Shown piece by piece: positions 2,102 to 21,157 of a DNA stretch of 64,000 bases. The stretch lies in sequence record OV032902.1, one strand, 5' to 3'. The notes beneath the pieces were generated by a model that saw nothing but the letters and a program-made list of their open reading frames with translations, was not told the DNA's origin and did no database searches. Numbering within the stretch: position 1 is the stretch's first letter; every line of letters starts with the position of its first letter. The position numbers and the translations under genes were made by a program.

Positions 2102-2128
2102 TGAATCTCTTTTTATCTCTATATTACC
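2102..2128 (+). promoter_or_regulatory. Early-type phage promoter, copy 1 (TGAATCT..TCTCTATATTACCT)
   Basis: TATATTAC at 2120-2127 matches the phiKZ early-promoter core. The motif recurs at 3783, 9818 and 19022, each time upstream of an operon. Confidence 0.7.
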
Positions 2129-2160
2129 TTATTGAGTTTATTCACATAAAGGAAATAATC

Positions 2161-2484
2161 ATGCGTAAATTTGCAAACGGAGAAGAGGTACAAGTATTCT
2201 CTGAAACTACTGGTAAGTGGGAAGATACTTTTGTCATGGAATACATTGGCGATTGTGATGTAACCGTCATGCCTAACATGAAAAAGATTTTCTATACTAA
2301 CTGTTACAAGCTGGATTCCAGTTATCATCCGATAGCTAAGAAACACGGACAAGATTACGTTCTAGCTGAAGAGCAACATATCCGCCGTAAACCAAAGCAT
2401 CCTACGGTAGTCGACTTTGACGAAATGATGCACAAACTTAAAAACCCTGATCTAATCGAAAAGCCAGAAGGAGAAATGGCATGA
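2161..2484 (+). CDS. Hypothetical protein (107 aa), possibly small beta-barrel
   Basis: ATG at 2161 follows AAGGAAATAATC, preferred over the 2095 start. Stop overlaps the next start (ATGA). Confidence 0.8.
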   Translation: MRKFANGEEVQVFSETTGKWEDTFVMEYIGDCDVTVMPNMKKIFYTNCYKLDSSYHPIAKKHGQDYVLAEEQHIRRKPKHPTVVDFDEMMHKLKNPDLIEKPEGEMA

Positions 2485-3353
2485 GTAACAACAAAGGTAT
2501 TGGCGTACAATACAACAACATCAAAAAGACAGGCATTAGCCTAGAGACGCACATCAATCTAGTATATGCGGTACTGGCTTTATTCATCGGTCTTTTCATG
2601 TTCGTTGTTTACGAAAACGTAAAGCTTACTCGTGAGGTTGACGAGCTGACTCAAATGCTAGATAACGCAGAAGGTAATCTAGTTGACTCAGAAGACAATG
2701 CCTTGGCGCTGACTCGTGAATTAACGATGATGACCAAGCATGTTAAGGACTTAGAAGAGAAACTAAATCCTGAACCATTCAAGCCTGAGTTGGGTCTGAC
2801 TGATCTTCAGAATAAGTTGTGTCTTGCTATCACAGCTTTCACTGAAACAAACGGTGAACCTACCTTGGCACGGGAGACCATGTCTTGGGCCATCATAAAC
2901 AGAGCCATTGACCCTCGTGCGGCAGATGGCAAGAGTCGAGCTTACAAAAACAATACTTGTGCAGTAGGTGCGGCTAAGAACCAATACTCTGGTATGGGTC
3001 CATACATCGTAGATATTGAAGATGTAGTATGGGGTAACATTACATCCTTTACTCCTGCCCTGGCCAAAAAGAATGCAGAGGAAATGAAAGCATGGAAAGA
3101 CATCTTGCGCATCTCTTCTGAAATCATTGATGGTAAACTAACCCGAAAGACCACAGCCACTCATTTCATCTCCTTCCGAGGAATGAAAGGCGCCAAGCGT
3201 CCATCGTGGGTAGATTACTTCATGCCTGTAGGTACGACTACTGAATCTGGCTTGCATACTCTTTACCGTGATTATGGTTATGATCGCACAACAGGTGAGA
3301 TAGTTTACTTTACTAAGGCTACTCCATATAACCCTAACAAACATCGTTACTAG
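2481..3353 (+). CDS. Membrane-anchored cell-wall hydrolase, Hydrolase_2/SleB-like lytic transglycosylase
   Basis: N-terminal TM (INLVYAVLALFIGLFMFVVY) and a coiled coil, then CLAITAFTETNGE..AIINR..TCAV..NQYS, matching the SleB pattern CLAxxxYxEARGE..VIxNR..xCxV..QFS with the catalytic Glu. Confidence 0.78.
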   Translation: MSNNKGIGVQYNNIKKTGISLETHINLVYAVLALFIGLFMFVVYENVKLTREVDELTQMLDNAEGNLVDSEDNALALTRELTMMTKHVKDLEEKLNPEPFKPELGLTDLQNKLCLAITAFTETNGEPTLARETMSWAIINRAIDPRAADGKSRAYKNNTCAVGAAKNQYSGMGPYIVDIEDVVWGNITSFTPALAKKNAEEMKAWKDILRISSEIIDGKLTRKTTATHFISFRGMKGAKRPSWVDYFMPVGTTTESGLHTLYRDYGYDRTTGEIVYFTKATPYNPNKHRY

Positions 3354-3361
3354 GAGGTAAC

Positions 3362-3781
3362 ATGAATTTTCTAATGGGCGAATATATTCTAGAGGTTTAC
3401 GTGGTAGCATATTTCTTGTGCTACTTTGCATTCCTTCTTACTAACCTTCCACCAAAAGGAACAATGGGTACAAAACAAATGAAGAGACTTTGGTTCGAAG
3501 GTCAACTAATGCTTATGCTTCTACCTATGTTTGTAGGCGGCATCGCATATGGACTGGCTTTCGGATTCGGTGCACGGGAAGGTTCAGCTAACTATCTGTT
3601 CTTTGTGTTCTCTAGTTGGTTCTTATCTACCATGGTATATAAGACGATACGCAAGAAGTCCACAGAAACGCCAGGTCAGAAGTTCTTCTCAACCGCTGTA
3701 GAAAAGTATCATAGCGTAATAGGTCCGGTGTTGTTTACCTTCTTCTTGTATGGTATCTGGATCTATCATCCTGCGGTTTAA
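3362..3781 (+). CDS. Multi-pass (about 4 TM) membrane protein of unknown function
   Basis: GGAGG RBS; several hydrophobic stretches. Confidence 0.8.
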   Translation: MNFLMGEYILEVYVVAYFLCYFAFLLTNLPPKGTMGTKQMKRLWFEGQLMLMLLPMFVGGIAYGLAFGFGAREGSANYLFFVFSSWFLSTMVYKTIRKKSTETPGQKFFSTAVEKYHSVIGPVLFTFFLYGIWIYHPAV

Positions 3782-3782
3782 A

Positions 3783-3821
3783 TGAATCTGAAAGATATTT
3801 CATCTCTATATAACCTATATG
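3783..3821 (+). promoter_or_regulatory. Early-type phage promoter, copy 2
   Basis: TGAATCTGAAAGATATTTCATCTCTATATAACCTATATG, nearly identical to the copy at 19022. Confidence 0.75.
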
Positions 3822-3858
3822 GATGTGATACAATAAACATCTATACCACTGCTTTTAG

Positions 3859-3893
3859 CCTCCACAGCCTTCGGGTTGTGGAGGTATCTTTTT
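3859..3893 (+). terminator. UUCG-loop hairpin with U-rich tail
   Basis: CCTCCACAGCC-TTCG-GGTTGTGGAGG followed by TATCTTTTT. Confidence 0.7.
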
Positions 3894-3924
3894 CTAACAC
3901 AACTTAAAATTTTGGAGTTTTGCT

Positions 3925-4053
3925 ATGCGTCTTACTAACGGTCAAGTTCTTGTTATGGGTATTCTTTCTCTTGTTCTATTCTTTACAGTAGGTCAAGATA
4001 ACACTGAAGCTTACAACAATCACGTAATGGAAACAACAACTCATCAAGAGTAA
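3925..4053 (+). CDS. 42-aa single-TM peptide (absent from the ORF track)
   Basis: GGAG RBS; MRLTNGQVLVMGILSLVLFFTVGQDNTEAYNNHVMETTTHQE; host-like codons; followed by a hairpin. Confidence 0.7.
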   Translation: MRLTNGQVLVMGILSLVLFFTVGQDNTEAYNNHVMETTTHQE

Positions 4054-4061
4054 TATTATCA

Positions 4062-4083
4062 AAAGGCTTTTCGCAGAGCCTTT
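4062..4083 (+). terminator. Hairpin after the 42-aa ORF
   Basis: AAAGGCTTT-TCGC-AGAGCCTTT. Confidence 0.5.
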
Positions 4084-4120
4084 GAATAATCTTACTATCT
4101 AAAACAAAAGGAAACTTATT

Positions 4121-4384
4121 ATGTTCTATACTGCTAAACAATGGTGTGCTGCTAAACGTCTTGGTACTTTCATGGGCTTTGTTGGTTACACTGTACACAT
4201 GTTCCTAACTTGGTTAGAGAACCCTGTATCTTGGATCATCCTTGGTCTTAACGTAATCGCTGGTCCTGAAGCGGTTGTAGCTTGTATCGTAACTTGGGTT
4301 GTTATCGATGTAGTTATGTCTGCTATCGTAAACCTTGTAGCGTTTTTCTGTAACGACAACCGCATGATTGCGGATGCCGCTTAA
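4121..4384 (+). CDS. Small hydrophobic membrane protein (87 aa)
   Basis: AAGGAA RBS; mostly hydrophobic. Confidence 0.8.
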   Translation: MFYTAKQWCAAKRLGTFMGFVGYTVHMFLTWLENPVSWIILGLNVIAGPEAVVACIVTWVVIDVVMSAIVNLVAFFCNDNRMIADAA

Positions 4385-4425
4385 TCTTTACTATCTTAAT
4401 CTAAATCTAATTCGGAGTATTTCTC

Positions 4426-4764
4426 ATGTTTAAACTATTTACTGATATCAAACAAAAAGTAACTAACTTCTTCAACGGTGCTTACCTTGCACTTAAATCT
4501 GCATTCGCTTCAGAAAACAAAGCTGATGCTGCGATGTCTTATGCTGTTAACGCTAAAGACATGCCACTTGATGCAGCTACTCGTGCTGGTATCAAGTTCG
4601 GTGGTGTTCTTGGCTTCAACGTAACTCACCCACTACAACTATCTGTACTTGGTATTTACTTTGTAGCTGAAGCTTTCTTCGGTGCTGGCCTTGTTGCGGC
4701 ACTATGTGGCGTAGTAATTATTCCTGTAGTTACTGCTACTCTATGTGCAATCTTCCTTGACTAA
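4426..4764 (+). CDS. Membrane protein with MFKLF amphipathic N-terminus (112 aa)
   Basis: GGAG RBS; starts MFKLFTDIKQKVTNFF; hydrophobic C-terminal half. Confidence 0.82.
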   Translation: MFKLFTDIKQKVTNFFNGAYLALKSAFASENKADAAMSYAVNAKDMPLDAATRAGIKFGGVLGFNVTHPLQLSVLGIYFVAEAFFGAGLVAALCGVVIIPVVTATLCAIFLD

Positions 4765-4776
4765 TTCGGAGGTCAT

Positions 4777-5301
4777 ATGTTTAATTGGTTCAAAAATAAA
4801 ATCATGGCTGCCGCTAAGGCAGTCAAGGAGTTTTTCACTGAAGGTAAGTTTCTAGTGAAAGCGCCTAAGGTTATTCGCAATAACGTTTCGCCACTAGGTG
4901 GTTGGAAATGGTCACCTGAGTTAGATGAATATCTGACTCGTATCGAAGACACATACCTGGGCATGAACGAAGGTACTGTTGAGCTTCTAATTCAAGAGTT
5001 GCCTGGCGTGTTCGCAATGAAGTCAATCTCTAACCACCGTGGTATGCGCGTAGTTAAGCAATTCATCATTAATCAGCTAAAGCAGCTGGTAGCTGGTGAT
5101 AAAGAGAAAACGTCTTATCTTAACAAAATGGAACAGTTTATCCCTAACAAGGAAACTGGTCCTATGCCTGAATCACAAAAAGAAATCTCATACGGCATGG
5201 CTCGTGTGATCTGTCTATATTTCAACGAAGTACCTGCTCCTATGTTTTCTAACAATAAGGGGGCTAAGGTATTTAGTCTTCTTAAAGCAATGGAGCAATA
5301 A
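4777..5301 (+). CDS. Hypothetical protein with amphipathic N-terminus (174 aa)
   Basis: GGAGG RBS; starts MFNWFKNKIMAAAKAVKEFF. Confidence 0.82.
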   Translation: MFNWFKNKIMAAAKAVKEFFTEGKFLVKAPKVIRNNVSPLGGWKWSPELDEYLTRIEDTYLGMNEGTVELLIQELPGVFAMKSISNHRGMRVVKQFIINQLKQLVAGDKEKTSYLNKMEQFIPNKETGPMPESQKEISYGMARVICLYFNEVPAPMFSNNKGAKVFSLLKAMEQ

Positions 5302-5303
5302 TT

Positions 5304-5741
5304 ATGTTTAAACTGTTTAAGAAAATCATCAAGTCAGTTGTTGACTTTGTTAAATCTATCTTCTCTAAAGAAGAAAAGAAACAAGAAGTAATTAAAACCA
5401 AGGAAGAAAAACTTGGCGAACTATTTGACAAGAGCGTTCGCGGTAATGCTATTACTGAAAAAGATGTAGAACTAATCACTGCTGATACTCCAGCAGAAGC
5501 TATCTATATCGTAGATCATTTCACTGGTAGCCCAATGTTTCCGCAAGAAGGTCGCGTCATCTACTATTTCTTTGGTCAGTTTTGTGAAAACGAAACAGTT
5601 GACGAAAAACTTCAGCAGGCGATTCTTGATGTCGTTTTGAAGTTTGGTCCAAAGATCATAGAAACAAAAGGTATCTGTATTGGCGCGCGCGCTTCTTTTG
5701 CCGCGATAATTAAACGTTATGAAGAAAACAAGGACAAATAA
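5304..5741 (+). CDS. Hypothetical protein, paralog of 7952..8374
   Basis: Starts MFKLFKKIIKSVVDFVKSIF. SVRGNAITEKDVEL and FCENETVD match SVTGNPIKESDVAL and FAENKTVD. Confidence 0.85.
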   Translation: MFKLFKKIIKSVVDFVKSIFSKEEKKQEVIKTKEEKLGELFDKSVRGNAITEKDVELITADTPAEAIYIVDHFTGSPMFPQEGRVIYYFFGQFCENETVDEKLQQAILDVVLKFGPKIIETKGICIGARASFAAIIKRYEENKDK

Positions 5742-6607
5742 TGAATACTAACAAAATCACAAACGAAATTAACAACATCGTAATTTTTACGAGAAAGAAC
5801 GATGCTTTCATTTCACGCAATGCTATGGCCGATGCGACAGGCATTAATGGCACTATTGCTTCCATGGCCGTTGGTGCCGGTAGTGTACTTGGTGCACTTC
5901 TTCCGGTAGCTGTCGTTGACTTTTTCATCGACATGGCAAAGGAAACTGGCGTCGATGGCGCTGCTGTAGTGACAACTGCTTTATCTGAAATATGCGAATC
6001 AATCGGTCTCGAATATAAAGATAGCTTAGTTGCCTTGGTACTAGGCGGCGCTATTGCTGGCATCGCTGGTGCTGGCTTGGGTTGGTTAGTCAAACAACTT
6101 ATTGATTGGGGCGTTAAACGCATTCAATCAAAGAAGATAGAAGCCAAGTTCGAGATGTTTAAAAACGCAAATGCCGGTTTACAATCTACGGCCATTATGA
6201 TTGCAGAGCGCGAAGAGTTAACCGATTACGACGTATTTTGTCTACTGGAACAATTGGAAAACTTCATGTCTATTTTTGGTGTGAGCTTTGATGACTTAAA
6301 TAAACTAGTTAAGCGAGTTAACGAAATAAAGTTTGTTGAGTGTCAAGAGGAAATCATCGAAGAAAGCATTGATCTTCACGCTAACCTGCTCAACGAAGCA
6401 CTAGACGTAGAACTAAAGTCGATCCCAGACGAATACGTTTCTTCTGATCTAGATGAGACATATTTGCTGTTGTCTGAAATGGGCATCTCCTTGGATAACT
6501 GGCTTCATCTACTAGATGTAGAAAATCTATGTAAGAAACCACAAAATGAAATGAATAATTTCATGCTTAAATATAAACAGGAAATAAAGAAAAATGCAAT
6601 TGCGTAA
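5741..6607 (+). CDS. Glycine-zipper-like membrane protein, paralog of 8442..9299
   Basis: GSVLGALLP, GGAIAGIAGAGLG and TDY..F..FG..FDD..KFV are shared with the 8442 protein. Confidence 0.85.
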   Translation: MNTNKITNEINNIVIFTRKNDAFISRNAMADATGINGTIASMAVGAGSVLGALLPVAVVDFFIDMAKETGVDGAAVVTTALSEICESIGLEYKDSLVALVLGGAIAGIAGAGLGWLVKQLIDWGVKRIQSKKIEAKFEMFKNANAGLQSTAIMIAEREELTDYDVFCLLEQLENFMSIFGVSFDDLNKLVKRVNEIKFVECQEEIIEESIDLHANLLNEALDVELKSIPDEYVSSDLDETYLLLSEMGISLDNWLHLLDVENLCKKPQNEMNNFMLKYKQEIKKNAIA

Positions 6608-6878
6608 TCCGTTTCTAAATATCATTGCAGATCTATTGGTTGGCGATGAATTAGAAAAGCAACGACTCCATGCTAAAAGGTCGATTAAGGCCATTGTTTC
6701 TCTCTGTAAGTCAAATAGGTTCCGATTGACCGATGACCTACGAGAAGCCATCGAGGGAGTTTTTGATATAAATCCAACAGCGACACTGTCCTTTGAAGTC
6801 CACATGCGAAACCAAAATGGCGATGATATGAAAACAGCCATCGTTGACAGTATAGCTATTTTTGTTAAAGATGAGTAA
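6594..6878 (+). CDS. Hypothetical protein (94 aa), probable distant paralog of 9293..9631
   Basis: Overlaps the upstream stop; shares NP..EKQR..E.(V/L)F.(I/L).P with the 9293 protein. Confidence 0.7.
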   Translation: MQLRNPFLNIIADLLVGDELEKQRLHAKRSIKAIVSLCKSNRFRLTDDLREAIEGVFDINPTATLSFEVHMRNQNGDDMKTAIVDSIAIFVKDE

Positions 6879-6933
6879 ACCCCAATGGGTGTTTACTAAG
6901 CATCCATGAGAATTTATTTAAAGAGAGTAACTT

Positions 6934-7503
6934 ATGTTTAAACTATTCAAACGCATCAAAGATGCAATCGTAAACTTCGTATCTTCTATCTTCGGTAAGA
7001 AAGAAGAAGCTAAACAAGAAACTGTTCAAGAAGAAACTGTATCTCCTGAAGTACAGCAGTCTATTGAAGAGTTCGAGTCTAAAGTAGATCTTCCTGAGAA
7101 AAGCAACAACGGTCTTGATTACGTAGCTAAAGAGTTCCGTCATTACCTAGGTCGTCATGCTACTCATGATATCCGTAACATCGAAGACATCCAACGTGTA
7201 TGGTTTGCACGTGGTGTTAAGATCGAACAGGTTAAGAAGCGCATGCTTGGTCTACGTAACGTGTTCAATATGAAAGTAATCGAGTCATTGACTACAGGTG
7301 CTGAAGAGTGTCTAGGTCGTGACGGTATCGATACTATCGAGAAGCACGCAATGTCTATCGAGACTGGTTACCGCAAAGCTCTTAAGAACCTACTTAAGAA
7401 CTCTGTGAAACACATGCCATCTTACTTTGCTAAGAAGCATAAGAACCAGATCGCTAAGATCATCAACGACATCACGGCTACTAGCTATGTTCCGGCTAAT
7501 TAA
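6934..7503 (+). CDS. Hypothetical protein with MFKLFK N-terminus (189 aa)
   Basis: Starts MFKLFKRIKDAIVNFVSSIFGKKEE; strongly host-like codons. Confidence 0.85.
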   Translation: MFKLFKRIKDAIVNFVSSIFGKKEEAKQETVQEETVSPEVQQSIEEFESKVDLPEKSNNGLDYVAKEFRHYLGRHATHDIRNIEDIQRVWFARGVKIEQVKKRMLGLRNVFNMKVIESLTTGAEECLGRDGIDTIEKHAMSIETGYRKALKNLLKNSVKHMPSYFAKKHKNQIAKIINDITATSYVPAN

Positions 7504-7942
7504 GAAATGGGTGCGTAAATTCAAGTTATGGCTGTGCGGTCCATCTGTGCCAGACAAACTTGATGCACCTCAGGTGAAACATCCTGACCCAGTCGAAACA
7601 GATGTTCTCGTTGTAGACAATCAATGTGCTCTTGATATCATAATGGTCATCAAGGCAGCTGGTGCGTTTATTACTGAAGTTAAGCATGTTGGCTTTTCTA
7701 AAGTATCACGCGGCTTGCGACTAAAGCTCATAGCGCTGCATAAAATGCTACTGCAAATAGACAGTGTAGATAGCGTAACGCGTCGATCGTCGACACGTCT
7801 GCATGAACTAATCGATGAGGTCATCGCATATGCGAAAGAGGAAACTACTCCGATTAAACGCGAAGAGTTCTTCCGCTTTGCAGAGATGATGAAACTCAAT
7901 ATCCAAACTATCTTACGTAATCGCAACATCCCAATGGGATAA
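7487..7942 (+). CDS. Hypothetical protein with MFRLIKK N-terminus (151 aa)
   Basis: The in-frame ATG at 7487 gives MFRLIKKWVRKFKLW, matching the neighbouring leaders; preferred over 7427. Confidence 0.72.
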   Translation: MFRLIKKWVRKFKLWLCGPSVPDKLDAPQVKHPDPVETDVLVVDNQCALDIIMVIKAAGAFITEVKHVGFSKVSRGLRLKLIALHKMLLQIDSVDSVTRRSSTRLHELIDEVIAYAKEETTPIKREEFFRFAEMMKLNIQTILRNRNIPMG

Positions 7943-7951
7943 GGAAACATA

Positions 7952-8374
7952 ATGTTTAAACTATTTGGTAAAATTAAAGACGCTGTTGTTGGCTTCTTTA
8001 AATCTGTTGTTGAATTTGTCTTTGGTAAGAAAGAAGATAAATCTGAAAAAGCTGAGCGTACTCTAGAGGACGTCTTCAAAGAAAGTGTAACTGGTAATCC
8101 AATTAAAGAGTCAGACGTGGCTCTTTTCCAAGTGGATACACTAGAAACAGCCAAGAAAATCGTTTCGATGTTCGTTTCTATTACTGCACCTAAAGACGGA
8201 GAAGGTTGTGTTTGTTTGACCGAGCCTCTATTTGCAGAAAACAAAACAGTAGACGGCTGTCTACGTATCATCTTCCTTGCAGTAATTCTTAAGTACCACG
8301 ATGAATTGATTAAGGATGAGAAAACCAAACTTATCACTACTTATGTGATGCGTCGCTATAAAGGTGAAGAGTAA
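7952..8374 (+). CDS. Hypothetical protein, paralog of 5304..5741
   Basis: AAGGAA RBS; starts MFKLFGKIKDAVVGFFKSVV. Confidence 0.85.
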   Translation: MFKLFGKIKDAVVGFFKSVVEFVFGKKEDKSEKAERTLEDVFKESVTGNPIKESDVALFQVDTLETAKKIVSMFVSITAPKDGEGCVCLTEPLFAENKTVDGCLRIIFLAVILKYHDELIKDEKTKLITTYVMRRYKGEE

Positions 8375-8441
8375 CGCACAAAGGACATCTTATGGTGTCC
8401 TTGATGAGTTATTCATCACGTAAACAAAAAAGGAAAAAATC

Positions 8442-9299
8442 ATGAACACTGAAATCAACAAAGTTTCTCTTGCTATTCAAGAAATTGTAAAGTACACAAA
8501 CGTTAACCAATCCATCGTTGACCTTGGTATGAAGGAAGACGCTAAAGGACTAGGTGAATTTGGCGACGCAGCAGCCATGGGCATCGGTGGTCTTTTGGGT
8601 GCTCTGCTGCCTAGTTTCGTTTATGACTACTTTATGGAAATGGGTCAACAGATAGGCGCAGCAGCAATCACGGAAGCTATCTCTAACTTTTGTGAGGAAT
8701 TAGGTATCGATTATCTAGATGGCCTTTTTACAATTGTTATTGGCAGTGCATTGTCAGGCGTACTTGGCATGGTCGCGGGCTTTCTAATCAAACGAGGTAT
8801 TGAGTGGTTAGTTAAGCGCCGTCAGAAAAAGCGCAACGAGAAACTATGGGCCCATTATGCGGACTCGATTGACTCCCTGCATAAACAAGCTACTAGTATC
8901 TTACTGGCTGAAGAGATTACCGATTACTCTAGTTTTAAACTTATGACTGATCTAGAGTTCTTCTTGGAATTATTCGGAGCCAAGTTTGACGATATGCATC
9001 GCTTTGCTAAGAAAGTACACGCGGCCAAATTTGTTAAAGGTCAGGATGAGTTATTAGAAAGCGGTCTTGAAAAACATGCCGGTCTTCGTGAAGCGTTAGT
9101 TACTACGGAACTCAAACTAGTTCCTGATCATCTCGCACCAGAGGACTTAGAGGACGCATATAGCCTGATGGCGGATATGGGTTTTGGCACACCATTAGAT
9201 TATTTAAAATATGGCGACGTTGATCGTCTGGCAGAAGAGCCAGTAGAAGAATTAACTCGCATCATGAAGAGATTAAAAGAGGAAGATTTAACATGGTAG
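8442..9299 (+). CDS. Glycine-zipper-like membrane protein, paralog of 5741..6607
   Basis: GIGGLLGALLP and GSALSGVLGMVAG; collinear similarity over ~285 aa. Confidence 0.85.
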   Translation: MNTEINKVSLAIQEIVKYTNVNQSIVDLGMKEDAKGLGEFGDAAAMGIGGLLGALLPSFVYDYFMEMGQQIGAAAITEAISNFCEELGIDYLDGLFTIVIGSALSGVLGMVAGFLIKRGIEWLVKRRQKKRNEKLWAHYADSIDSLHKQATSILLAEEITDYSSFKLMTDLEFFLELFGAKFDDMHRFAKKVHAAKFVKGQDELLESGLEKHAGLREALVTTELKLVPDHLAPEDLEDAYSLMADMGFGTPLDYLKYGDVDRLAEEPVEELTRIMKRLKEEDLTW

Positions 9300-9631
9300 C
9301 ATTATTAGCACTTGGCAGTAACCCAGTTGGATGGGGTCTACTTGGAGCCCTAGCAGTGGTAGAAGGAGTTCGCCAGGGTAAGAATATCTATGATGACCAC
9401 AAGGAAAAGCAACGTCAAGAAAAATTCAATTCTTGGCTTTCTTTCCTTGAAGAAAAACAAAAAGTCGGTGAAATGGTACTGAAATGGCCAGACCGCAAAA
9501 ACCTGGAACTATTGTTTGGATTAGAACCTGATCTAAATTTCGAGTATGAACTAAAGCTTGGTCACGAGCATACTGGAAACTGGAGCAAGGCTCTAAAGTG
9601 GGTATTTAAGAAGTACCTGAAGGACGACTAA
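9293..9631 (+). CDS. Small protein with N-terminal hydrophobic segment (NPVGW)
   Basis: GAGGAAG RBS; MVALLALGSNPVGWGLLGALAVV. Confidence 0.8.
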   Translation: MVALLALGSNPVGWGLLGALAVVEGVRQGKNIYDDHKEKQRQEKFNSWLSFLEEKQKVGEMVLKWPDRKNLELLFGLEPDLNFEYELKLGHEHTGNWSKALKWVFKKYLKDD

Positions 9632-9637
9632 ATCCTT

Positions 9638-9662
9638 AAAGCTCATTCTCCGAGTGGGCTTT
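9638..9662 (+). terminator. Hairpin after the paralog cluster
   Basis: AAAGCTCATTC-TCC-GAGTGGGCTTT. Confidence 0.55.
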
Positions 9663-9713
9663 GTGGACTATGTCCATAACCTAACTTTAATCTATATACA
9701 AGGAATATTTCAA

Positions 9714-9815
9714 ATGGAAAATTTTGACCTAGTTGACTTCTGTGAAAACAATGCGCCACAATTAGATGTGGACCTACCTAGCGTTGAAGAGCTAATCGCT
9801 GAATTTGACAGTTAA
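9714..9815 (+). CDS. 33-aa acidic peptide (absent from the ORF track)
   Basis: AAGGAA RBS; MENFDLVDFCENNAPQLDVDLPSVEELIAEFDS. Confidence 0.62.
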   Translation: MENFDLVDFCENNAPQLDVDLPSVEELIAEFDS

Positions 9816-9817
9816 AT

Positions 9818-9856
9818 TGAATTTGAAAAGATTTACACTTCTATATAACTGATATG
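9818..9856 (+). promoter_or_regulatory. Early-type phage promoter, copy 3
   Basis: TGAATTTGAAAAGATTTACACTTCTATATAACTGATATG. Confidence 0.7.
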
Positions 9857-9931
9857 CATAGGATGAATTAATCATCCATTTAAACCAAACCCCTGGCAAT
9901 AATGCCCCAATCCTAAATAAGGAATACTATT

Positions 9932-10696: not shown

Positions 10697-10799
10697 GTAT
10701 TAGATTAAGATAAGTAAATACGTGTAAGCTGACGGAGGTACCTTAGGGTGCCTCCTGAAGTTGCACTTAATCCAATTTTTATTTTTAAGGAATTTTGTC

Positions 10800-11471: not shown

Positions 11472-11478
11472 TAAACTC

Positions 11479-11607: not shown

Positions 11608-11609
11608 TT

Positions 11610-12524: not shown

Positions 12525-12551
12525 TCAACATCTAACATAGAGAGATATAAC

Positions 12552-13466: not shown

Positions 13467-13546
13467 TAAACTCGATGTCGTTCGAAAGAGCGGCATCTAT
13501 GATTACTGGTGTAATCACTTAATCTATTATTTAAAAGGAATCTAAA

Positions 13547-14968
13547 ATGAAAGTATTTAACACTGATCTTGCACAGCACCTAGCTAAAGTTTCTATCGAG
13601 CGCACGTTCCGTGAAGTGGGCCAAACCTCGCGCGTTATCTTTAGCGTTGTAGAAAAAGAACCTGGCGTTGTCTTTAAGATGGACCTTGAACCTTTGGCTG
13701 GTACTCTAAAGGACTTGGACATTGTTGAATTCATGTCTGCACAAAACCGCGCGCCTGAGTTCGGTATCGCTATCGCAATGTTCGTTCTTAATCAAGCGGG
13801 TATTGCACATCGCATAGATAGTATTGTTGAAGCAGGTAAAACATTTGCTCCTGGATACACAGGTGGGTTTTACAAGTTGAACTCAGATGGTCGCAGAATT
13901 ATCGAGATCTTCTTTGATGCGACTATCTCTATCGAAGATGTTTACTCTGAAATTCGCAAGTATCTTGATGCTCCTGACTACAAGGCAATTAACTATGGAC
14001 TTAGAAGGGAATCCCGAGAGGAAACCTTTAATACTCGCTATGTCCAGTTCGTGGAGTTGTTCAGTGCTATACAGACACGCGTCGACCATTCAGGTACTGA
14101 TCCAATCATGCGCCTTAGTGTTCCTCCACATGTTGCCAACGACGACATGATGAATGCGGTATTTGGTATTATCGGCAGTGACGTTTCTTTTAGTCGCGAA
14201 CAGGCCATTGCGTACTCCAAGTCTGGTAATGGGACTCTTAACTTATTAGGGCTTTACTTCCTGGGTGCATATTCCTATGCGTCTGGTCTATCAGTAGAAG
14301 AGCATTACATTCATCGTGCTTATCTGGCAGGGAAGATTCGCGAACAGGATCTTGACGTATTCATCGGTTTAGCTTTTGACAATATGACTGGTACGAGTGC
14401 AACTGGCTTCAATGCTCCTCGTCACGGCAGCATGCAAGCACAAGCTGCATCAGTAGTACAACAACAGCCTCATGTACAGCAACAAGGTTTCGTTAGTCAA
14501 ACCTACCAATTCGATCTTCTGGCAGAAGTACGCAAGCTTTACAAAGACGGTTATCTCCTAGAGAAGACTGAATTCGTACAGCAAACTAATACCATCTACA
14601 TGAAGTTCAAGTCTTGGACAGCTGGTGCTGTTAAACTAGAAAGCGGTGCACTGTCTATTAGTTCTGTGCACTTTGTTAATGGCGTGGTTGAAGTTACATA
14701 CAGCATTCAAACTTTGATGCTTTCCCCTGGCGTTGATTACGTGCGCGAACTGGAAAACCTAAAGGTCAATCAGGAGCGTGACGAACTGGTACGCATTATT
14801 GCGGGTATCGATTCTAAAGCTCCTGGTACGATTAGCTATCAAGAACTGATGCGTGTTGATCATCCTGTGTATGAAAAATACAAGCCAATGTTCCAAGAGT
14901 TCTTTGATAGTAAACAGACTGTACCGCTAGCAGATCTAATGGTTTACATCATCGAATCGTTCCGCTAA
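13547..14968 (+). CDS. Hypothetical protein (473 aa) with Gln-rich linker
   Basis: AAGGAA RBS; the linker SMQAQAASVVQQQPHVQQQG separates two domains. Confidence 0.82.
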   Translation: MKVFNTDLAQHLAKVSIERTFREVGQTSRVIFSVVEKEPGVVFKMDLEPLAGTLKDLDIVEFMSAQNRAPEFGIAIAMFVLNQAGIAHRIDSIVEAGKTFAPGYTGGFYKLNSDGRRIIEIFFDATISIEDVYSEIRKYLDAPDYKAINYGLRRESREETFNTRYVQFVELFSAIQTRVDHSGTDPIMRLSVPPHVANDDMMNAVFGIIGSDVSFSREQAIAYSKSGNGTLNLLGLYFLGAYSYASGLSVEEHYIHRAYLAGKIREQDLDVFIGLAFDNMTGTSATGFNAPRHGSMQAQAASVVQQQPHVQQQGFVSQTYQFDLLAEVRKLYKDGYLLEKTEFVQQTNTIYMKFKSWTAGAVKLESGALSISSVHFVNGVVEVTYSIQTLMLSPGVDYVRELENLKVNQERDELVRIIAGIDSKAPGTISYQELMRVDHPVYEKYKPMFQEFFDSKQTVPLADLMVYIIESFR

Positions 14969-14975
14969 TCCAATC

Positions 14976-14995
14976 GAGGCTTCTTCGGGAGCCTC
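14976..14995 (+). terminator. UUCG-loop hairpin
   Basis: GAGGCTTC-TTCG-GGAGCCTC. Confidence 0.65.
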
Positions 14996-15036
14996 ATTTC
15001 TAACCCACTGTTGCAATCCTATAAGGAGGATGCATT

Positions 15037-15369
15037 ATGAAAATACTTATGCTTGATGGACCAGTAGAAAAAGGTGGTTCATTCGCTAGCTCTCGTATGT
15101 GTGTACTGCACGACGGTCAAACTGACTGGCTAGAGGTTCGTGATCTTATGATGCGCGTTCTAGGCATGCGCTGTTACAAACAGACCGGTGAAAAACCACG
15201 CTTCCATGAATATCGCTGTAATGCTGATAAGAAAGAAGTTAGCTTGTCTATCGGCGATTGTGTTCATAAATGCCATCTTGTTCCTGTCCCTGGGTTAACC
15301 GACCTTGCGTCTAAGTTAACTCAAATGCAAATCGACCTGGATAAGAAATATGCACAATCTAAAGGATAA
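15037..15369 (+). CDS. Hypothetical protein (110 aa)
   Basis: AAGGAGG RBS. Confidence 0.78.
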   Translation: MKILMLDGPVEKGGSFASSRMCVLHDGQTDWLEVRDLMMRVLGMRCYKQTGEKPRFHEYRCNADKKEVSLSIGDCVHKCHLVPVPGLTDLASKLTQMQIDLDKKYAQSKG

Positions 15370-16261
15370 AGTGCTACTGATGATTAGCACGTCAATGCCT
15401 GCCCGCGCCCACGACATGTTCTTTATGGACGACTGGGATGTTGTCTTTCCCCGTTTAGAAAAGAAGGGTCTGACTAACACTAAACGTTGGGCAGCATTCC
15501 TTGGAACTCTTCGTCATGAAACCGGTGGCTTCCATCGATTCGAAGAGAATCTGAACTACAGTGCAAAGGCACTCATTCGCGTATGGCCTCATCGCTTTAA
15601 GAAGCCTGGTCAAGCTAAGCGTATTGCACGCAAACCGCGTGAGATTGCTAACCACGTCTATAATGGGCGTATGGGTAATCGACTTGGTTCAGATGATGGT
15701 TGGAATACTCGTGGTTCTGGTTTAATCCAGTTAACCGGTATGAACAACTATCGCAAGTATGGTCGACGCAATGGTCTTGATCTAATCAATGACCCTGCAC
15801 TGCTTCGTGAAAGCTCCCTTGCTATGTGGACAGTCGCAGCTGACTTCTTTGCAGCTACTAAAGTAAAAGGCAAAAACCTTTTCGAGTTAGCTGATGAAGG
15901 ACGCTTAAAAGAAATCTGTCGTGCTGTTAATGGAGGCTATCATGGGCTTGCCGACCGTATTACTTGGACGGAGTACTACAACGCTATGTTTACTGATGCT
16001 AATGAGCTTCGTGTTCGCATCCTTTGTAAACGTGGTAAGCGCGGTACTGTAGTCAAACAATGCCAGTACATGCTGGCGGTCATCAACGGTAACTCAGATA
16101 AGAGCTACTTGTATGATGGCATCTTTGGTAAGAAGACAGAAGAAATCGTCAAGACTTACCAGTCTAATAATGGTCTTGTAGTTGACGGGATAATCGGTAC
16201 AAGAACCTATCTAAAATTGTTCTTCGAGTACGATGAAATAATCGACGTAGAAGATTTCTAA
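15350..16261 (+). CDS. GH19-family endolysin with C-terminal peptidoglycan-binding domain
   Basis: AAFLGTLRHETGGF..EENLNYSA..IANHVY..GN..DGW..RGSGLIQLTG..NY is the phage GH19 pattern; KRGKRGTVVK..DGIFGKKT..YQ..GLVVDGIIG matches PG_binding_1. Confidence 0.9.
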   Translation: MHNLKDKVLLMISTSMPARAHDMFFMDDWDVVFPRLEKKGLTNTKRWAAFLGTLRHETGGFHRFEENLNYSAKALIRVWPHRFKKPGQAKRIARKPREIANHVYNGRMGNRLGSDDGWNTRGSGLIQLTGMNNYRKYGRRNGLDLINDPALLRESSLAMWTVAADFFAATKVKGKNLFELADEGRLKEICRAVNGGYHGLADRITWTEYYNAMFTDANELRVRILCKRGKRGTVVKQCQYMLAVINGNSDKSYLYDGIFGKKTEEIVKTYQSNNGLVVDGIIGTRTYLKLFFEYDEIIDVEDF

Positions 16262-16276
16262 TAAGAGGTACACACC

Positions 16277-17131
16277 ATGTCTAAGCCTGGTTATGAAACT
16301 GCCGTAGCAATCGGCACTATGTTTGGTTCTAACGCTCTACTTATCGCTAATGCTCGTCGCACTGGTGTTTTCAACGGCAAGAAAATCGAAGGTCGTTTTG
16401 TAGATACTAGCGGTGACCTAGCAGCTGCACTATTGCTGTTAGATTCAGCAGCATACCACATCTCAGCTATTTACTCTCGCCGTGCAGAGGAAGACTTCAA
16501 AGGTCAACCTGGCGGTAAGCGTAAGGTAGCGCAAACTCGCGATGCAATCCGTAACGGCATTTGTCGTTGGACTAGCGAAATGCATGAGTTCTTCTATCCT
16601 GGTCATAAGCACTCGTTCGTGTCTACGAACAATCCATGGCTGGTTGAGAATACCAAAACTCACCGTGCATTAAAACTTCTTCTGCCTCGTGCTATCGTGG
16701 AACTCGCTTCTGTAGTTACACGTCGCAAAGGTACATGGGAAGCAATGCTAATCAATGACATGTTAAGTCAGTTGGTTGTAATCGCAAACGATCTTATTCA
16801 TGGCATGCCTGGCAAGCCTGAAGAGAAAGAAGTATTCCATGCCGACAAGATTGGCGAATTCCGTGCAGCTCACCGTGGCTTCGTCGGTACAGATGTTAAA
16901 GCTCATCAAGCGCAATGGATGCCTCACAAAATGATCTCTCCAGAAGTAAGTACGTATCTTGGCTCTAAGCTAAATACACTTAAGTGGGAAATCAGTGAAA
17001 ACGATGGCGAAGTCGTTAAAGCTCAAGGCGACATCGTACGTATTGGTGGTCGTGCTTACCTAGTGGTAGCAGACACGATCAAAATGCAAACCGGTTACCA
17101 GCAAGTGCCTGGTGAACTTCAACTACTGTAA
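16277..17131 (+). CDS. Hypothetical protein (284 aa)
   Basis: GAGG RBS; no motif recognised. Confidence 0.8.
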   Translation: MSKPGYETAVAIGTMFGSNALLIANARRTGVFNGKKIEGRFVDTSGDLAAALLLLDSAAYHISAIYSRRAEEDFKGQPGGKRKVAQTRDAIRNGICRWTSEMHEFFYPGHKHSFVSTNNPWLVENTKTHRALKLLLPRAIVELASVVTRRKGTWEAMLINDMLSQLVVIANDLIHGMPGKPEEKEVFHADKIGEFRAAHRGFVGTDVKAHQAQWMPHKMISPEVSTYLGSKLNTLKWEISENDGEVVKAQGDIVRIGGRAYLVVADTIKMQTGYQQVPGELQLL

Positions 17132-17146
17132 TGGGAGATTGTCATC

Positions 17147-17704
17147 ATGGCAACTGCACAACTAACTAACAAAGACGCGCTAGAAGTAGCAGCGAAATAC
17201 GATACGGGTTACAGCGCTCGTAAACTTGTGGCTTGTTACCACGAAACAATTGCATTCCTAATGGAAAGACAACAAGACCTAACACTTAAAGGTATTGGTG
17301 TATTCCGTTTCAAGAAAGCAACTGCTAAGCGTCATGCTTACATCTCTTTCAAACCATCGCGTACTCAAGTGTCTAACGACCCTGCGAAGATGACTCAAGA
17401 CACTCCGTTCGATGAAATGCTCTTCATGCTTGCAGAGCAACTCAAGCACGATAAGTCTAAGATCCTCGAAGATTATGCGGCAGCATTCCTTGCGTTCTGT
17501 GCGTTAACTGTAGCATTTAAAGAAGATGCTCCGGTCCGCATTATTAACGGCGGTGAATTCCGAGTTGTTGAAAAATACTATGGCGTAGTTCGCGGCAAAG
17601 AAGTGAACGGTGTACGCTACGTATTTAAGCATCACCTGACTCTGAAGAAGGACGGCGATACTAAACCTGGACCTTCTAAGCGTCACCAATTCGGTAAGAA
17701 GTAA
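17147..17704 (+). CDS. Tandem HU/IHF-like DNA-binding protein
   Basis: Two HU-like units: ..ETIAFLMERQQDLTLKGIGVFRFKK..ISFKPS and ..AFKEDAPVRIINGGEFRVVEK..VFK. Confidence 0.55.
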   Translation: MATAQLTNKDALEVAAKYDTGYSARKLVACYHETIAFLMERQQDLTLKGIGVFRFKKATAKRHAYISFKPSRTQVSNDPAKMTQDTPFDEMLFMLAEQLKHDKSKILEDYAAAFLAFCALTVAFKEDAPVRIINGGEFRVVEKYYGVVRGKEVNGVRYVFKHHLTLKKDGDTKPGPSKRHQFGKK

Positions 17705-18396
17705 TGTTAGTAAAACACGTTGAAGTAAATCCAACGCAACTGAAGACGATCGACTGTATCTATGACGGTCGTTTTCAAATCTCTGAAGAAGCATTTTACG
17801 ATAGTCAAGAAGATATCGTATATGCGTTTCCTGCTGATCAGACCCTCGACAATATCTTCTTAGAAGACATCGAAGGTTTACCAGCGGGACGCATTAGTGC
17901 TCTTCTACTATACGCTCTAGCTTGGCGTCCTATCCCGTACATTAAAGACGAAGACTTACTAGACCACACCAAAGGTTTACGTATTGTTGCTTCGTCTGCG
18001 GGCGCAGTCCGAGTTGGACGTTTTGTATGGAAGTTCGAAACTCCTATCCCACATGCTTTTCATTCTACGTTTTATCACGTACCTGGTATTTCTAATATCT
18101 TGGTGAATGAAGCAGGCGGTATGAAAACCACTTCCAATGTCGACATCACGTTGTCTGCTAACCATGGTTACAACGTTATGGTTTCTGATGATCTCGACAA
18201 TTTGTTTGAGGTACATGCAAGCGTTCTAGTCGCTAGTGCATTCAATGGTATTTATATGCCGGATGCAGAATTGATTCGATACATCGATGGCGATGAAACA
18301 AACTTTGCACGCTCTAATGTAGCTTACGGTACAGCTTATCTTCCTGAGAAGGTTGATGCGCGAAACGATACCGACCCAATCTATCTAGTACAATAA
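17704..18396 (+). CDS. Degenerate NUMOD4/HNH-like protein, probably nuclease-dead
   Basis: HVPGISNILVNEAG..GY..VHASVLVASAF..IRYIDGDETN..SNVAY follows the NUMOD4-HNH layout but has RY in place of the usual NH. Confidence 0.55.
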   Translation: MLVKHVEVNPTQLKTIDCIYDGRFQISEEAFYDSQEDIVYAFPADQTLDNIFLEDIEGLPAGRISALLLYALAWRPIPYIKDEDLLDHTKGLRIVASSAGAVRVGRFVWKFETPIPHAFHSTFYHVPGISNILVNEAGGMKTTSNVDITLSANHGYNVMVSDDLDNLFEVHASVLVASAFNGIYMPDAELIRYIDGDETNFARSNVAYGTAYLPEKVDARNDTDPIYLVQ

Positions 18397-18406
18397 GGAG
18401 TCTGTC

Positions 18407-18772
18407 ATGACTACTAGCGAATTCACTACTCTTTCTGATCAAGCTACTCTAATCGCAAACTCTGCCGATATGAGTAAACCAGTTCTTCCTATCACTACTG
18501 GTAACGCTCGCATCATTCAAGAGTTCCTTGTTCAAGAACCTAAGTCTGATGTTCGTGTCGAGTTTCGCGGTGGCGTATACGCCGTCAAACGAATCTTCGA
18601 TGAAGGCATTGGCCTCATGTTCGAACTACAGGAAATGTGTCAAGCCCCGCAAGCTCAAACACAGAACTGTTCAATGACAATTCTGATGCAAGAAGATTGC
18701 GAGTTTGATGTTCGTACAGTCAATGGCTTTCGACTATTCATCGAACAGATGGGTGGCGAAGTAATCTCTTAA
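18407..18772 (+). CDS. Hypothetical protein (121 aa)
   Basis: AAGGAG RBS. Confidence 0.8.
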   Translation: MTTSEFTTLSDQATLIANSADMSKPVLPITTGNARIIQEFLVQEPKSDVRVEFRGGVYAVKRIFDEGIGLMFELQEMCQAPQAQTQNCSMTILMQEDCEFDVRTVNGFRLFIEQMGGEVIS

Positions 18773-18777
18773 CTCTT

Positions 18778-18806
18778 ACCCGCCTCCTTCGGGAGTGCGG
18801 GTTTTT
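18778..18806 (+). terminator. UUCG-loop terminator
   Basis: ACCCGCCTCC-TTCG-GGAGTGCGGGT followed by TTTT. Confidence 0.75.
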
Positions 18807-18834
18807 CTTATTCTCTTTATAAAAGGATATCATT

Positions 18835-18975
18835 ATGCCTACAGTTCCAGGTACTCAAACTCCACGACGTCCTATGGTGGCACCGCGTTTTCAAATGCCT
18901 ATCTCTAGTCACCGTCTTTTATTACTGCAATCACAAAGCCAGTGGTACATGAAGAACAAACCAACTAGTAAGTAA
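18835..18975 (+). CDS. 46-aa basic Pro-rich peptide (absent from the ORF track)
   Basis: AAAGGA RBS; MPTVPGTQTPRRPMVAPRFQMPISSHRLLLLQSQSQWYMKNKPTSK; flanked by hairpins. Confidence 0.5.
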   Translation: MPTVPGTQTPRRPMVAPRFQMPISSHRLLLLQSQSQWYMKNKPTSK

Positions 18976-18982
18976 TATCATC

Positions 18983-19006
18983 GCAGTCGCTCTATGGAGC
19001 GGCTGC
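18983..19006 (+). terminator. Hairpin sharing its outer stem with 11479..11500
   Basis: GCAGTCGCTC-TATG-GAGCGGCTGC. Confidence 0.55.
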
Positions 19007-19021
19007 TATTGGTAGTATTTA

Positions 19022-19060
19022 TGAATCTGAAAAGATATTCATCTCTATATTACCTATATG
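19022..19060 (+). promoter_or_regulatory. Early-type phage promoter, copy 4
   Basis: TGAATCTGAAAAGATATTCATCTCTATATTACCTATATG; TATATTAC at 19046-19053. Confidence 0.75.
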
Positions 19061-19126
19061 AGATTGCACACGTAATCTTATAAACCACATCTAATCTTAT
19101 TTAAATAACTTCAAAGGAAGACTATT

Positions 19127-21157
19127 ATGAACACTCGTAAAACTGTAATCGCAACTCTTATCGCTCTAGCAACTACTCCAGCTCTAGCAGCAGGCCACAT
19201 CGGTAACCAGTCTGGTAACGACAATGACGTTGATATTGTTGTAGGTGACATTGAAACAGTAATGGGTAACATCTGTAACCAATCTGGTTCTAACAACGAT
19301 TGTGATGTTGACATCGAAAACGTAAACGGTGATCTAGTGATCGCTGATGGCGCTAACGTAACTATCAATCAATCTGGCGGTGGTGCTGATAACCGTACCG
19401 GTGTACTTCAAACTAAGTACGACTGGGGTACTCGCGTTTCAACTGTAGATCACCGTGAAGACGGCACCAAAGCAGTTGAGTCAGTTAACTACTACAAAGA
19501 CGGTAAGGTTGTTGTTGCTACATGGTATGAAACCGCAGATGGTGAGCGCACTAACTACGAGCAAAACCTAGTTGCAAGCAATGCTACAAGTCTTGACCAT
19601 GCTCTACTTAAAGGTAAGGTTGATTCTAACAAAGCTGCGTCTGAGCGCGGCGATGCTGCACTGCAAGCACAGATTGATGCATGGGTTGATACTGATACAG
19701 TTCGCTCTGATGCAGAAATCAAAGCTGTTGCTGATGTAGGTGACAAAATCCTAGCTAATGAAATCGACGCACTACGTGACGAGCAAGTAGCTAAGAACAA
19801 TGCGCAAGACACAGCAATCAAAACTCAGTGGGATCTGATCCAAGATGTTGAAGCTAAGAACGAAGAGCAAGACGTTGCCCTAGCAGGTAAAGTTGACCGT
19901 GAAGAGTTCGAAGCATCTCAGGCAGCACAAGACGCTGAACTAGATCGTCTAACTAACGATGTAGATGCAGCACAGTCTACAGCTGACCAAGCATTCGCTG
20001 ACGCACAACTAGCTAACCAAAAAGCTGACGCTAACACTACAGCAATCGCAGATCAACAAGAGCAGCTAAACCAAACAGCTGATCGTGTTACTTCAGTAGA
20101 AAACAATGTTGCAGATCTAGACAATCGTGTAACAGGCGTTGAAGCTGAACTAGGTAACAAAGTTAACTACGATGAGTTCCTAGCTGACCAGCAACGTCAA
20201 GACCAAGCTATCGCTGATGTTAATAACAAAGTAGATGGCGTGCAAGATCAAGTAAACAACCTAGACGGTCGTGTAAACGATGTTGAGCAAACTGCAAACG
20301 CAGCTATGGATCAAGCAATCTCTGCACAGCTAACTGGTGAGTACGCACAAGAACTTGCATACGGTGCACTAGAAGGTGTTCAACAAAATGCTGAGACAAT
20401 CAACCAAGTAGCGGCTGATTCTCTAGAGCGTGACAACAACCTACTAGAAGCAATCGACGAAACTCACGAGCAGTCTCTAGAGCGTGACAACATGATCGTC
20501 GAGTACGTTGTTGCTGATCAAGAGCGTCAAGATGCAGTTATCGCAGAAAACGATAAAGCATCTAAAGAGCGTGATGCTGAACTAGCTAAAGCAGTAACTA
20601 CTGTAGATGCTAAAGCTGAAGCTAACAAAGCGGAAATCGCTAAAGTTGAAACTGAGTCTAAAGACCGCGATGCAGCTATCGTAGCTAACCAAGCTAAAGT
20701 AGATGCTAAGCAAGACAAAGTGTTCAACGATTACCGTGTAGTTCAAGAGCAAGTAGATGCGGGTCAATTCGCAGCTATCGATTCTCTAGAAGCTGAGCTA
20801 TATGCACAAGCTGGTGTTAACGCACGTCAAGACAAGTCTATCGCTGCACTAAGCAACCGTATGGGCAAAGTTGAAAAGCGTGTATCTGCACTAGAAGGTC
20901 GTATGGACAAAGCTGAAGCTGGTATCGCAAACGCTATCGCTATGCAAGGTCTAACTGACAACATGCTATCTGTAGCAGTTGGTGGTTACGAAGGTGCATC
21001 TGCAATCGCGTTCGGTTCTGTAATCCCTGTTGGTCAAATCATGGCTGAGAAAGGTTACGCTACATTACCTGGTCTTAAAATTAAGACATCAGGCTCTGTA
21101 TCGATTCAGACAGGCGATACAGCAGCATCTATTGGTGTAGGTTTCGATTTTAAATAA
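19127..21157 (+). CDS. YadA-like trimeric autotransporter adhesin
   Basis: Signal peptide MNTRKTVIATLIALATTPALA; long coiled-coil stalk with polar core motifs (RQD, ERD); C-terminal anchor GIANAIAM..SVAVGGYEGASAIAFG..SIGVGFDFK. Confidence 0.85.
   Translation: MNTRKTVIATLIALATTPALAAGHIGNQSGNDNDVDIVVGDIETVMGNICNQSGSNNDCDVDIENVNGDLVIADGANVTINQSGGGADNRTGVLQTKYDWGTRVSTVDHREDGTKAVESVNYYKDGKVVVATWYETADGERTNYEQNLVASNATSLDHALLKGKVDSNKAASERGDAALQAQIDAWVDTDTVRSDAEIKAVADVGDKILANEIDALRDEQVAKNNAQDTAIKTQWDLIQDVEAKNEEQDVALAGKVDREEFEASQAAQDAELDRLTNDVDAAQSTADQAFADAQLANQKADANTTAIADQQEQLNQTADRVTSVENNVADLDNRVTGVEAELGNKVNYDEFLADQQRQDQAIADVNNKVDGVQDQVNNLDGRVNDVEQTANAAMDQAISAQLTGEYAQELAYGALEGVQQNAETINQVAADSLERDNNLLEAIDETHEQSLERDNMIVEYVVADQERQDAVIAENDKASKERDAELAKAVTTVDAKAEANKAEIAKVETESKDRDAAIVANQAKVDAKQDKVFNDYRVVQEQVDAGQFAAIDSLEAELYAQAGVNARQDKSIAALSNRMGKVEKRVSALEGRMDKAEAGIANAIAMQGLTDNMLSVAVGGYEGASAIAFGSVIPVGQIMAEKGYATLPGLKIKTSGSVSIQTGDTAASIGVGFDFK

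Follow-up and report, generated by a model that had tools for sequence, protein, structure and literature searches.

The DNA analysed here, a window of 64,000 nucleotides from sequence record OV032902.1 (window positions 1-64000), corresponds to record positions 256254-320253 of the 320,253-bp genome of the Vibrio jumbo phage vB_VpaM_sm033 (hereafter sm033) and reaches the end of the record; window bases 1-20000 were 100% identical to record 256254-276253. The window contains four plus-strand copies of a promoter-like motif, which are the subject of this study. An earlier note on this DNA had placed the starts of the motif at 2102, 3783, 9818 and 19022, and all four were confirmed. Positions refer to the window unless they are given as record positions, which count along the whole 320,253-bp record. 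The sm033 genome was rebuilt piecewise from annotated stretches of the public record and was consistent with independently fetched stretches up to position 320253.

Copy 1 covers positions 2100-2134, with the TGA of its upstream element at 2102-2104, the core TCTATATTAC at 2118-2127 and a weight-matrix score of 38.8. The corresponding features of copy 2 (3783-3821) are a TGA at 3789-3791, a core at 3805-3814 and a score of 42.6, those of copy 3 (9818-9856) a TGA at 9824-9826, a core at 9840-9849 and a score of 42.3, and those of copy 4 (19022-19060) a TGA at 19028-19030, a core at 19044-19053 and a score of 44.5. The alignment of copy 1 in the earlier note was six bases out of register, in that the TGAAT at 2102 matches not the first TGAAT of copies 2-4 but their second TGA (T-17 G-16 A-15, with motif positions numbered from the C of CTATAT; numbers such as -31 count from the predicted start). 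The predicted start was placed at the G six bases past the core because of the analogy to the Bacillus phage AR9 and the -10 rule, in agreement with phiKZ. It falls on the G at 2134 in copy 1, with a leader of 27 nt to the ATG at 2161, and on the G at 3821 in copy 2 (104 nt, ATG at 3925), 9856 in copy 3 (76 nt, ATG at 9932) and 19060 in copy 4 (67 nt, ATG at 19127). Copy 1 overlaps the terminator-type hairpin of the preceding virion structural gene (2079-2108, plus strand), the 3' arm and T-run of which double as the upstream element and AT spacer of the promoter. Copies 2 and 4 also show an imperfect inverted repeat around the core, for which alone an N4-type hairpin promoter came into consideration; the repeat is not part of the consensus.

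The unit behind copy 1 (2161-3781, plus strand) encodes a soluble protein of 107 aa, an N-terminally anchored Hydrolase_2-like protein of 290 aa and a 139-aa protein with two transmembrane segments, and both the unit and its promoter are conserved in the phages vB_pir03 and BONAISHI. In the protein atlas, the 290-aa protein is close to cell-wall hydrolases of the Hydrolase_2 type (score 0.89, with 173-177 features in common and a structural TM of 0.75 as given by the hit), and a sequence search against PDB gave no match to it. Thirteen small genes follow copy 2 (3925-9815, plus strand), several of which code for membrane proteins and several for MFKLFK-type paralogs; the first product, a membrane protein of 42 aa, corresponds to a 44-aa ortholog encoded after the matching promoter of vB_pir03. 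Several neighbouring small genes at 4426-8374 begin with the same amphipathic MFKLFK-type N-terminus, and the 288-aa gene at 5741 and the 285-aa gene at 8442 are alike in length and in the positions of their transmembrane segments. The unit behind copy 3 (9932-11500, plus strand) encodes two signal-peptide proteins of 254 and 223 aa and ends in a terminator-like hairpin at 11479-11500. The first gene behind copy 4 (19127-21157, plus strand) encodes a 676-aa protein with a signal-peptide-like N-terminus, a coiled coil and a YadA-type C-terminal anchor that scored below threshold (YadA_anchor, 20.6 bits against a cut-off of 22.7). It was examined as a candidate trimeric autotransporter adhesin, a class characterised by a signal peptide, a coiled-coil stalk and a YadA-type beta-barrel anchor at the C-terminus.

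These results largely uphold, as leads, the gene descriptions given in the earlier note, with transmembrane proteins encoded downstream of copies 1 and 2 and signal-peptide proteins downstream of copies 3 and 4. The Hydrolase_2-like and YadA-like labels are both backed by resemblance in the protein atlas, where all neighbours of the 676-aa protein are of the YadA_anchor type (score 0.89), while the YadA_anchor match itself is sub-threshold. No match to the 676-aa protein was found by sequence search in PDB and no homolog in vB_pir03. BONAISHI has a partial homolog (E 1.5e-7) located about 0.6 kb downstream of an early-type promoter that is identical to the BONAISHI nuclear-shell promoter. For ten promoter-downstream proteins tested against Pfam and PHROGs nothing scored above threshold, and no Rfam family was detected in the window.

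A search of the window with the 19-mer TCTCTATATWACCTATATG identified 3 matches at three or fewer mismatches, as compared to 0.03 expected; copy 3 (9837-9856) is more diverged and has the same architecture. The bare 8-mer TATATWAC showed no enrichment in the window (4 sites, as compared to 4.96 expected); the signal is that of the extended motif together with its strand, position and genome-wide count, rather than that of the octamer. Over the whole sm033 genome, CTATATWAC was found 26 times on the plus strand and never on the minus strand, and the reversed control gave 2 and 0 matches, respectively. A scan with a weight matrix built from the CTATATWAC sites recovered 27-28 plus-strand sites and no minus-strand site. 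The motif is thus four-copy, as first described, inside the window only; about 25 copies in the genome look functional, and the copy at record 86677 is near-identical to window copies 2 and 4.

According to the annotation tables, 23 of the 26 core sites are intergenic and located 25-120 nt upstream of plus-strand gene starts, and 7 of these 23 sit at a switch from minus-strand to plus-strand genes. The open reading frames of the set built here take up 93.7% of the genome, and the intergenic placement of the sites is thus far from random. Over all sm033 copies, the median length of the predicted leaders is about 33 nt. Hairpins with a GC-rich stem and a UUCG-type loop are the general terminator type of sm033 (49 on the plus and 14 on the minus strand), and eight of them end 11-44 nt ahead of a promoter core. 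Within window positions 1500-21400, terminator-like hairpins were about twice as frequent as in shuffled sequences (29 versus 14.0).

The 26 sites share the consensus TTTGA(A/T)-N9-A-NN-TCTATATWACY-N4-TG with fixed spacing. The core TCTATATWAC is invariant and is separated by an AT-rich spacer from the upstream element, in which T-17 is present in 25, G-16 in 22 and A-15 in all 26 copies. A-4 and G+15 are each found in 25 of the 26 copies, and T+14 in 20. The conserved upstream block proposed earlier is recovered genome-wide only in the form TTTGA(A/T), whereas the longer GAATYTGAAAAGAT block is confined to a subfamily of three to four copies, being common to those at record 86677, 260059 and 275298 and looser in that at 266094.

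Gene content provides the context for these promoters. Annotated in the sm033 record are a nuclear shell protein and, in split form, several RNA polymerase genes of the beta type. Record 145800 encodes a 549-aa ortholog (E 2e-99) of PHIKZ180, a subunit of the virion RNA polymerase that is annotated as a structural head protein. The non-virion subunits PHIKZ071 and PHIKZ055, both part of the solved structure of the phiKZ non-virion polymerase, have full-length orthologs encoded at record 204432 (E 2e-67) and 192320 (E 6e-59), respectively. Because it carries both polymerase sets and a gene for the nuclear shell protein, sm033 is, as judged from its gene repertoire, a phiKZ-like, nucleus-forming jumbo phage (chimallivirus). 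A tandem pair of promoter copies precedes the nuclear shell gene, with the PHIKZ055 ortholog after that, and a single copy precedes the PHIKZ071 ortholog. No promoter copy was found upstream of the virion polymerase genes of sm033. In phiKZ, the injected polymerase transcribes the early genes, those for the non-virion polymerase subunits included (PMC13282480), and the gene content of sm033 fits such a programme.

An early motif of about ten AT-rich bases, centred near -10, can be detected bioinformatically in every polymerase-encoding jumbo phage and has been confirmed wherever transcripts were profiled (PMC7598289). For phiKZ, the early consensus is TATATTAC; for 201phi2-1, the prediction is TTTRARR_BTATATTACDWHDGTG (PMC7058600). 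Differential RNA sequencing (dRNA-seq) of phiKZ mapped 32 early promoters, which combine an extended -10 box with a T-rich stretch beyond -19 on the upstream side, the 5' untranslated regions being mostly 31-40 nt long (PMC8244752). For AR9, 41 early promoters of the form AAATATATATTAT-(6N)-G, with the core ATATTAT, have been mapped (PMC5312081). Taken together, it is very probable that the four motifs are copies of a phage-wide, phiKZ-type early promoter that is read by the injected multisubunit virion RNA polymerase. The core, the architecture, the copy number, the strand bias and the gene content all support the suggestion, made at the outset, that the motif is an early promoter of this type. 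Motifs of this kind are already known; they are described here for a Vibrio clade for which no earlier description was found.

According to this model, the virion RNA polymerase would enter the cell together with the DNA and read a promoter composed of three parts. The first part would be the upstream element TTTGA(A/T) at about -34 to -29 from the start, the second the core TCTATATWACY at -16 to -6 with an A ahead of it at about -19, and the third the TG at which transcription would be initiated, with the G as the predicted first base. About 25 such copies would head plus-strand units, often at a change from minus-strand to plus-strand genes or immediately behind a terminator hairpin. Several observations weigh against this interpretation. 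Two of the 26 core matches (record 62779 and 249247) are intragenic and lack the flanking elements, and another (record 89760) overlaps an annotated start codon. The upstream element has a minority TCA form in the copies at record 135532, 182041, 204384 and 194224. Furthermore, the start site, the reading polymerase, the early timing and the independence from new protein synthesis are inferred from homology of the architecture to phiKZ and AR9 and from gene content. As a separate observation, one of the TCA-form copies precedes non-virion polymerase beta-like genes.

We also compared the promoters of sm033 to those of its three closest relatives, all Vibrio phages, the nuclear shell proteins of which are 53% (vB_pir03), 53% (C-ZP2022) and 29% (BONAISHI) identical to that of sm033. 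The genome of vB_pir03 contains 32 forward and 6 reverse TATATWAC sites, and 30 of the forward sites conform to TTTCA-N10-A-T-N-TCTATATWACC-N4-TG, with spacing exactly as in sm033. The same tandem promoter pair is located before the nuclear shell gene in vB_pir03. Promoters were also found in orthologous positions ahead of the hydrolase-like unit (vB_pir03 and BONAISHI) and of the 42/44-aa membrane protein, there with its leader hairpin (vB_pir03). No promoter analysis was found in the vB_pir03 paper. Beyond these genomes, two scans of IMG/VR with promoter patterns gave 0 hits and 2 isolated hits, respectively, neither of them informative.

The sister phages differ in a single base of the upstream element, which reads TTTCA in 28 of the 30 vB_pir03 sites, as compared to TTTGA in 22 of the 26 sm033 sites. 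Counts of the three-part pattern T[G/C]A-N15-TATATWAC-N5-TG gave 19 TGA and 1 TCA form in sm033, as compared to 1 and 20 in vB_pir03, 1 and 21 in C-ZP2022, 0 and 8 in BONAISHI, and 2 and 6 in phiKZ, with no match to the reversed-pattern controls in any genome. Counted from the predicted start, the base at about -31 is G in sm033, C in the relatives and degenerate in phiKZ. The comparison of these genomes indicates that the upstream element is real and held at a fixed distance, and that, in the lineage of sm033, one of its bases has changed from C to G in virtually every copy. This G/C switch between sister phages is a modestly new point.

The earlier note had proposed that the upstream block may be a second polymerase contact. 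In favour of this proposal, an element is conserved at a fixed distance and its position is also occupied in vB_pir03, BONAISHI and phiKZ, but the conservation concerns TTTGA(A/T) and not the full GAATYTGAAAAGAT. The best available support for a second contact that is base-specific comes from the TGA of sm033, where all Vibrio relatives have TCA, and we consider it possible, though somewhat doubtful, that the TTTGA block makes such a contact with the virion transcription machinery and has co-evolved with it. These polymerases lack a homolog of sigma and have to initiate in some other way (PMC13282480, a 2026 review). If the proposal is true, a comparison of the virion polymerases and co-packaged proteins of sm033 and vB_pir03 could reveal the determinant of promoter recognition in sigma-less polymerases, and the early promoters of the sister phages may be partly orthogonal. 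A natural change of specificity at a fixed promoter position would also provide a handle for promoter-swap and subunit-swap experiments.

Some of the copies are followed by structured leaders. The leader of copy 2 (3821-3924; folding z -3.9) contains a 12-bp GC-rich hairpin with a UUCG loop and a T-run (3858-3895, plus strand), which begins 37 nt past the predicted start, is of the usual terminator type of sm033 and is kept in the orthologous leader of vB_pir03. Leaders of 100-104 nt were identified behind window copy 2 and the copy at record 86677, and likewise behind their counterparts in vB_pir03 and C-ZP2022. Each such leader has a hairpin at the predicted +1, followed, 23-37 nt past the predicted start, by a GC-rich hairpin of 12-15 bp whose loop is UUCG or UUAG (z -3.5 to -5.0), and the genes after these long leaders encode orthologous small membrane proteins. 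A clear T-run is present only in the window copy. Between sm033 and vB_pir03, 5-6 of the 12 stem pairs are changed on both sides with pairing kept; for the hairpin of window copy 2, five stem pairs are changed on both sides and all are still paired. Stems were extended from the loop only while bases paired, and the count of paired changes is thus descriptive rather than an independent test. The structure may represent an attenuator, a short early RNA or a stabiliser. A stabilising 5' hairpin as a general feature of the early transcripts was rejected, as the mean z was -1.0 versus shuffled sequences but the energies did not differ from those of random genomic 32-mers (p=0.91); a 5' hairpin holds for individual copies, among them window copies 2-4.

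Hairpins of the same loop type were also noted elsewhere in the genome. A segment of 1.8 kb without annotated genes at record 178.6-180.5 kb contains about nine UUCG-loop terminator hairpins, one every 200-300 nt, several of which are followed by a repeated block of the type TTTTTAC...TAATATT. No tRNA was detected in this segment, which resembles a series of short transcription units, and its only match in Rfam scored far below threshold.

Among the alternatives to a single phage-wide promoter class, the one that survives best is that a subclass of the early promoters is tied to first genes for membrane or secreted proteins, giving these genes distinct control. The candidate subclass is defined by the extended GAATYTGAAAAGAT block, a near-perfect consensus and long, structured leaders of 67-104 nt, and consists of the copies at record 86677, 260059, 266094 and 275298, and hence window copies 2-4. 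All four first genes encode a transmembrane segment or a signal peptide, which is the case for about 2 of the roughly 20 other copies. The 5' hairpin plus the 12-15 bp UUCG/UUAG hairpin is common to two of the leaders and their vB_pir03 counterparts, and the linkage of promoter and gene is conserved in vB_pir03. However, the subclass was defined post hoc with n=4, and since its members have the four highest weight-matrix scores, they may resemble one another merely by being close to the consensus. The extension is missing from copy 1 and from other units with membrane genes (record 77756 and 85858), and the 5' hairpin energies are overall no different from those of the random genomic windows mentioned above. 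We therefore regard such a subclass as unlikely.

It is less probable still, to the point of being improbable, that the motif serves as a sigma-70 promoter of the host, as a site bound by a phage regulator or as a promoter of another, such as a middle, class. The motif does contain TTGA-like and TATAT-like blocks, but the spacer from TTGAWN to TATATW is 13 bp rather than 16-18 bp, on which ground the sigma-70 reading was rejected, and none of the four sites was called by a sigma-70 scan. In general, sigma-70-like promoters are depleted at window positions 1500-21400 to about half of the shuffled expectation (18 versus 38.1). The published middle and late motifs of phiKZ, with TACT centred 22 nt upstream of the start plus an A-rich repeat, and TATG, differ from the motif described here, the architecture of which instead matches promoters that have been experimentally assigned as early in phiKZ and AR9.

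The weakest alternative, that a dedicated four-copy promoter defines an envelope-directed regulon and that the earliest transcription is devoted to remodelling the host surface, draws on the many membrane and secreted proteins behind the window copies, the Hydrolase_2-like and YadA-anchor-like proteins included, and on a local enrichment of transmembrane segments among the first three genes (6/12 behind window copies versus 11/59 behind other copies, p=0.03), but it is already contradicted by the genome-wide count of 26-28 copies and is highly improbable. Transmembrane segments were predicted in 5 of the 24 promoter-proximal first genes, as compared to 50 of the 227 other plus-strand genes (p=1.0), and in 17 of the 71 genes in the first three positions, as compared to 38 of 180 (p=0.62), with odds ratios of 0.93-1.18 and p values of 0.6 or higher. 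The other copies head the nuclear shell gene, the orthologs of the non-virion polymerase and many genes for soluble proteins. Since there is no genome-wide enrichment and non-envelope genes follow the other copies, the conclusion that early transcription is directed at the host surface does not follow.

With the motif read as a phage-wide early promoter, the analysis yields a usable map of early promoters and predicted starts for sm033, a Vibrio jumbo phage of 320 kb with poor annotation, and for its relatives, and removes the mistaken idea of a surface-directed regulon. That YadA-like and cell-wall-hydrolase-like genes are located directly behind early-type promoters, and partly so in the relatives, is worth knowing. 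Apart from the promoters, the window contains an unannotated open frame of 4,936 codons (49192-63999, plus strand), which runs off the end of the record and seems to be continued at record 13-7539, the first annotated coding sequence. The two frames appear to be one giant gene split by linearisation of the record.

Finally, we compared the promoters of sm033 to those described in other phages. The architecture and spacing in vB_pir03, C-ZP2022 and BONAISHI are identical to those in sm033. Among the more distant systems, phiKZ, for which 28-32 early promoter copies read by the virion RNA polymerase have been mapped or predicted, has the same core octamer, a similar copy number and the same strong leading-strand bias (TATATTAC, 33 forward versus 9 reverse). 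Its forward sites have a TG at +14/+15 (5 nt past the core), an A at -4 and, in the same place as the upstream element of sm033, a block T-N-A-A-A that spans -17 to -13. In both phages, the promoter drives the genes for the nuclear shell and the non-virion polymerase (PMC13282480), and the median leader of about 33 nt in sm033 matches the 31-40 nt of phiKZ (PMC8244752). The two differ in that the core of sm033 is extended to TCTATATWAC, with W for T at one position, and in that the sharp TTTGA of sm033 is replaced in phiKZ by ATT(N)AAA, which is degenerate where sm033 has the G. In addition, phiKZ has a TTTAAR block adjoining the core.

The predicted promoter of 201phi2-1 consists of three blocks in the same order, TTTRARR, TATATTAC and GTG (PMC7058600, Table 2). 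By contrast, the bioinformatic predictions for OBP, N1M2 and EL have cores of the ATATTAT or ACATTAT type and a shorter gap after TTTCA/TTTYA (PMC7058600, Table 2). AR9 differs from sm033 in that it is not nucleus-forming and has uracil-containing DNA, and no upstream element of the TTTGA type has been reported for it. The promoters of AR9, as determined by dRNA-seq and primer extension (PMC5312081), nevertheless share with those of sm033 an AT-rich, -10-like core followed by six bases and an initiating G, and early transcription in AR9 is carried out by the injected virion polymerase, independently of protein synthesis (PMC5312081).

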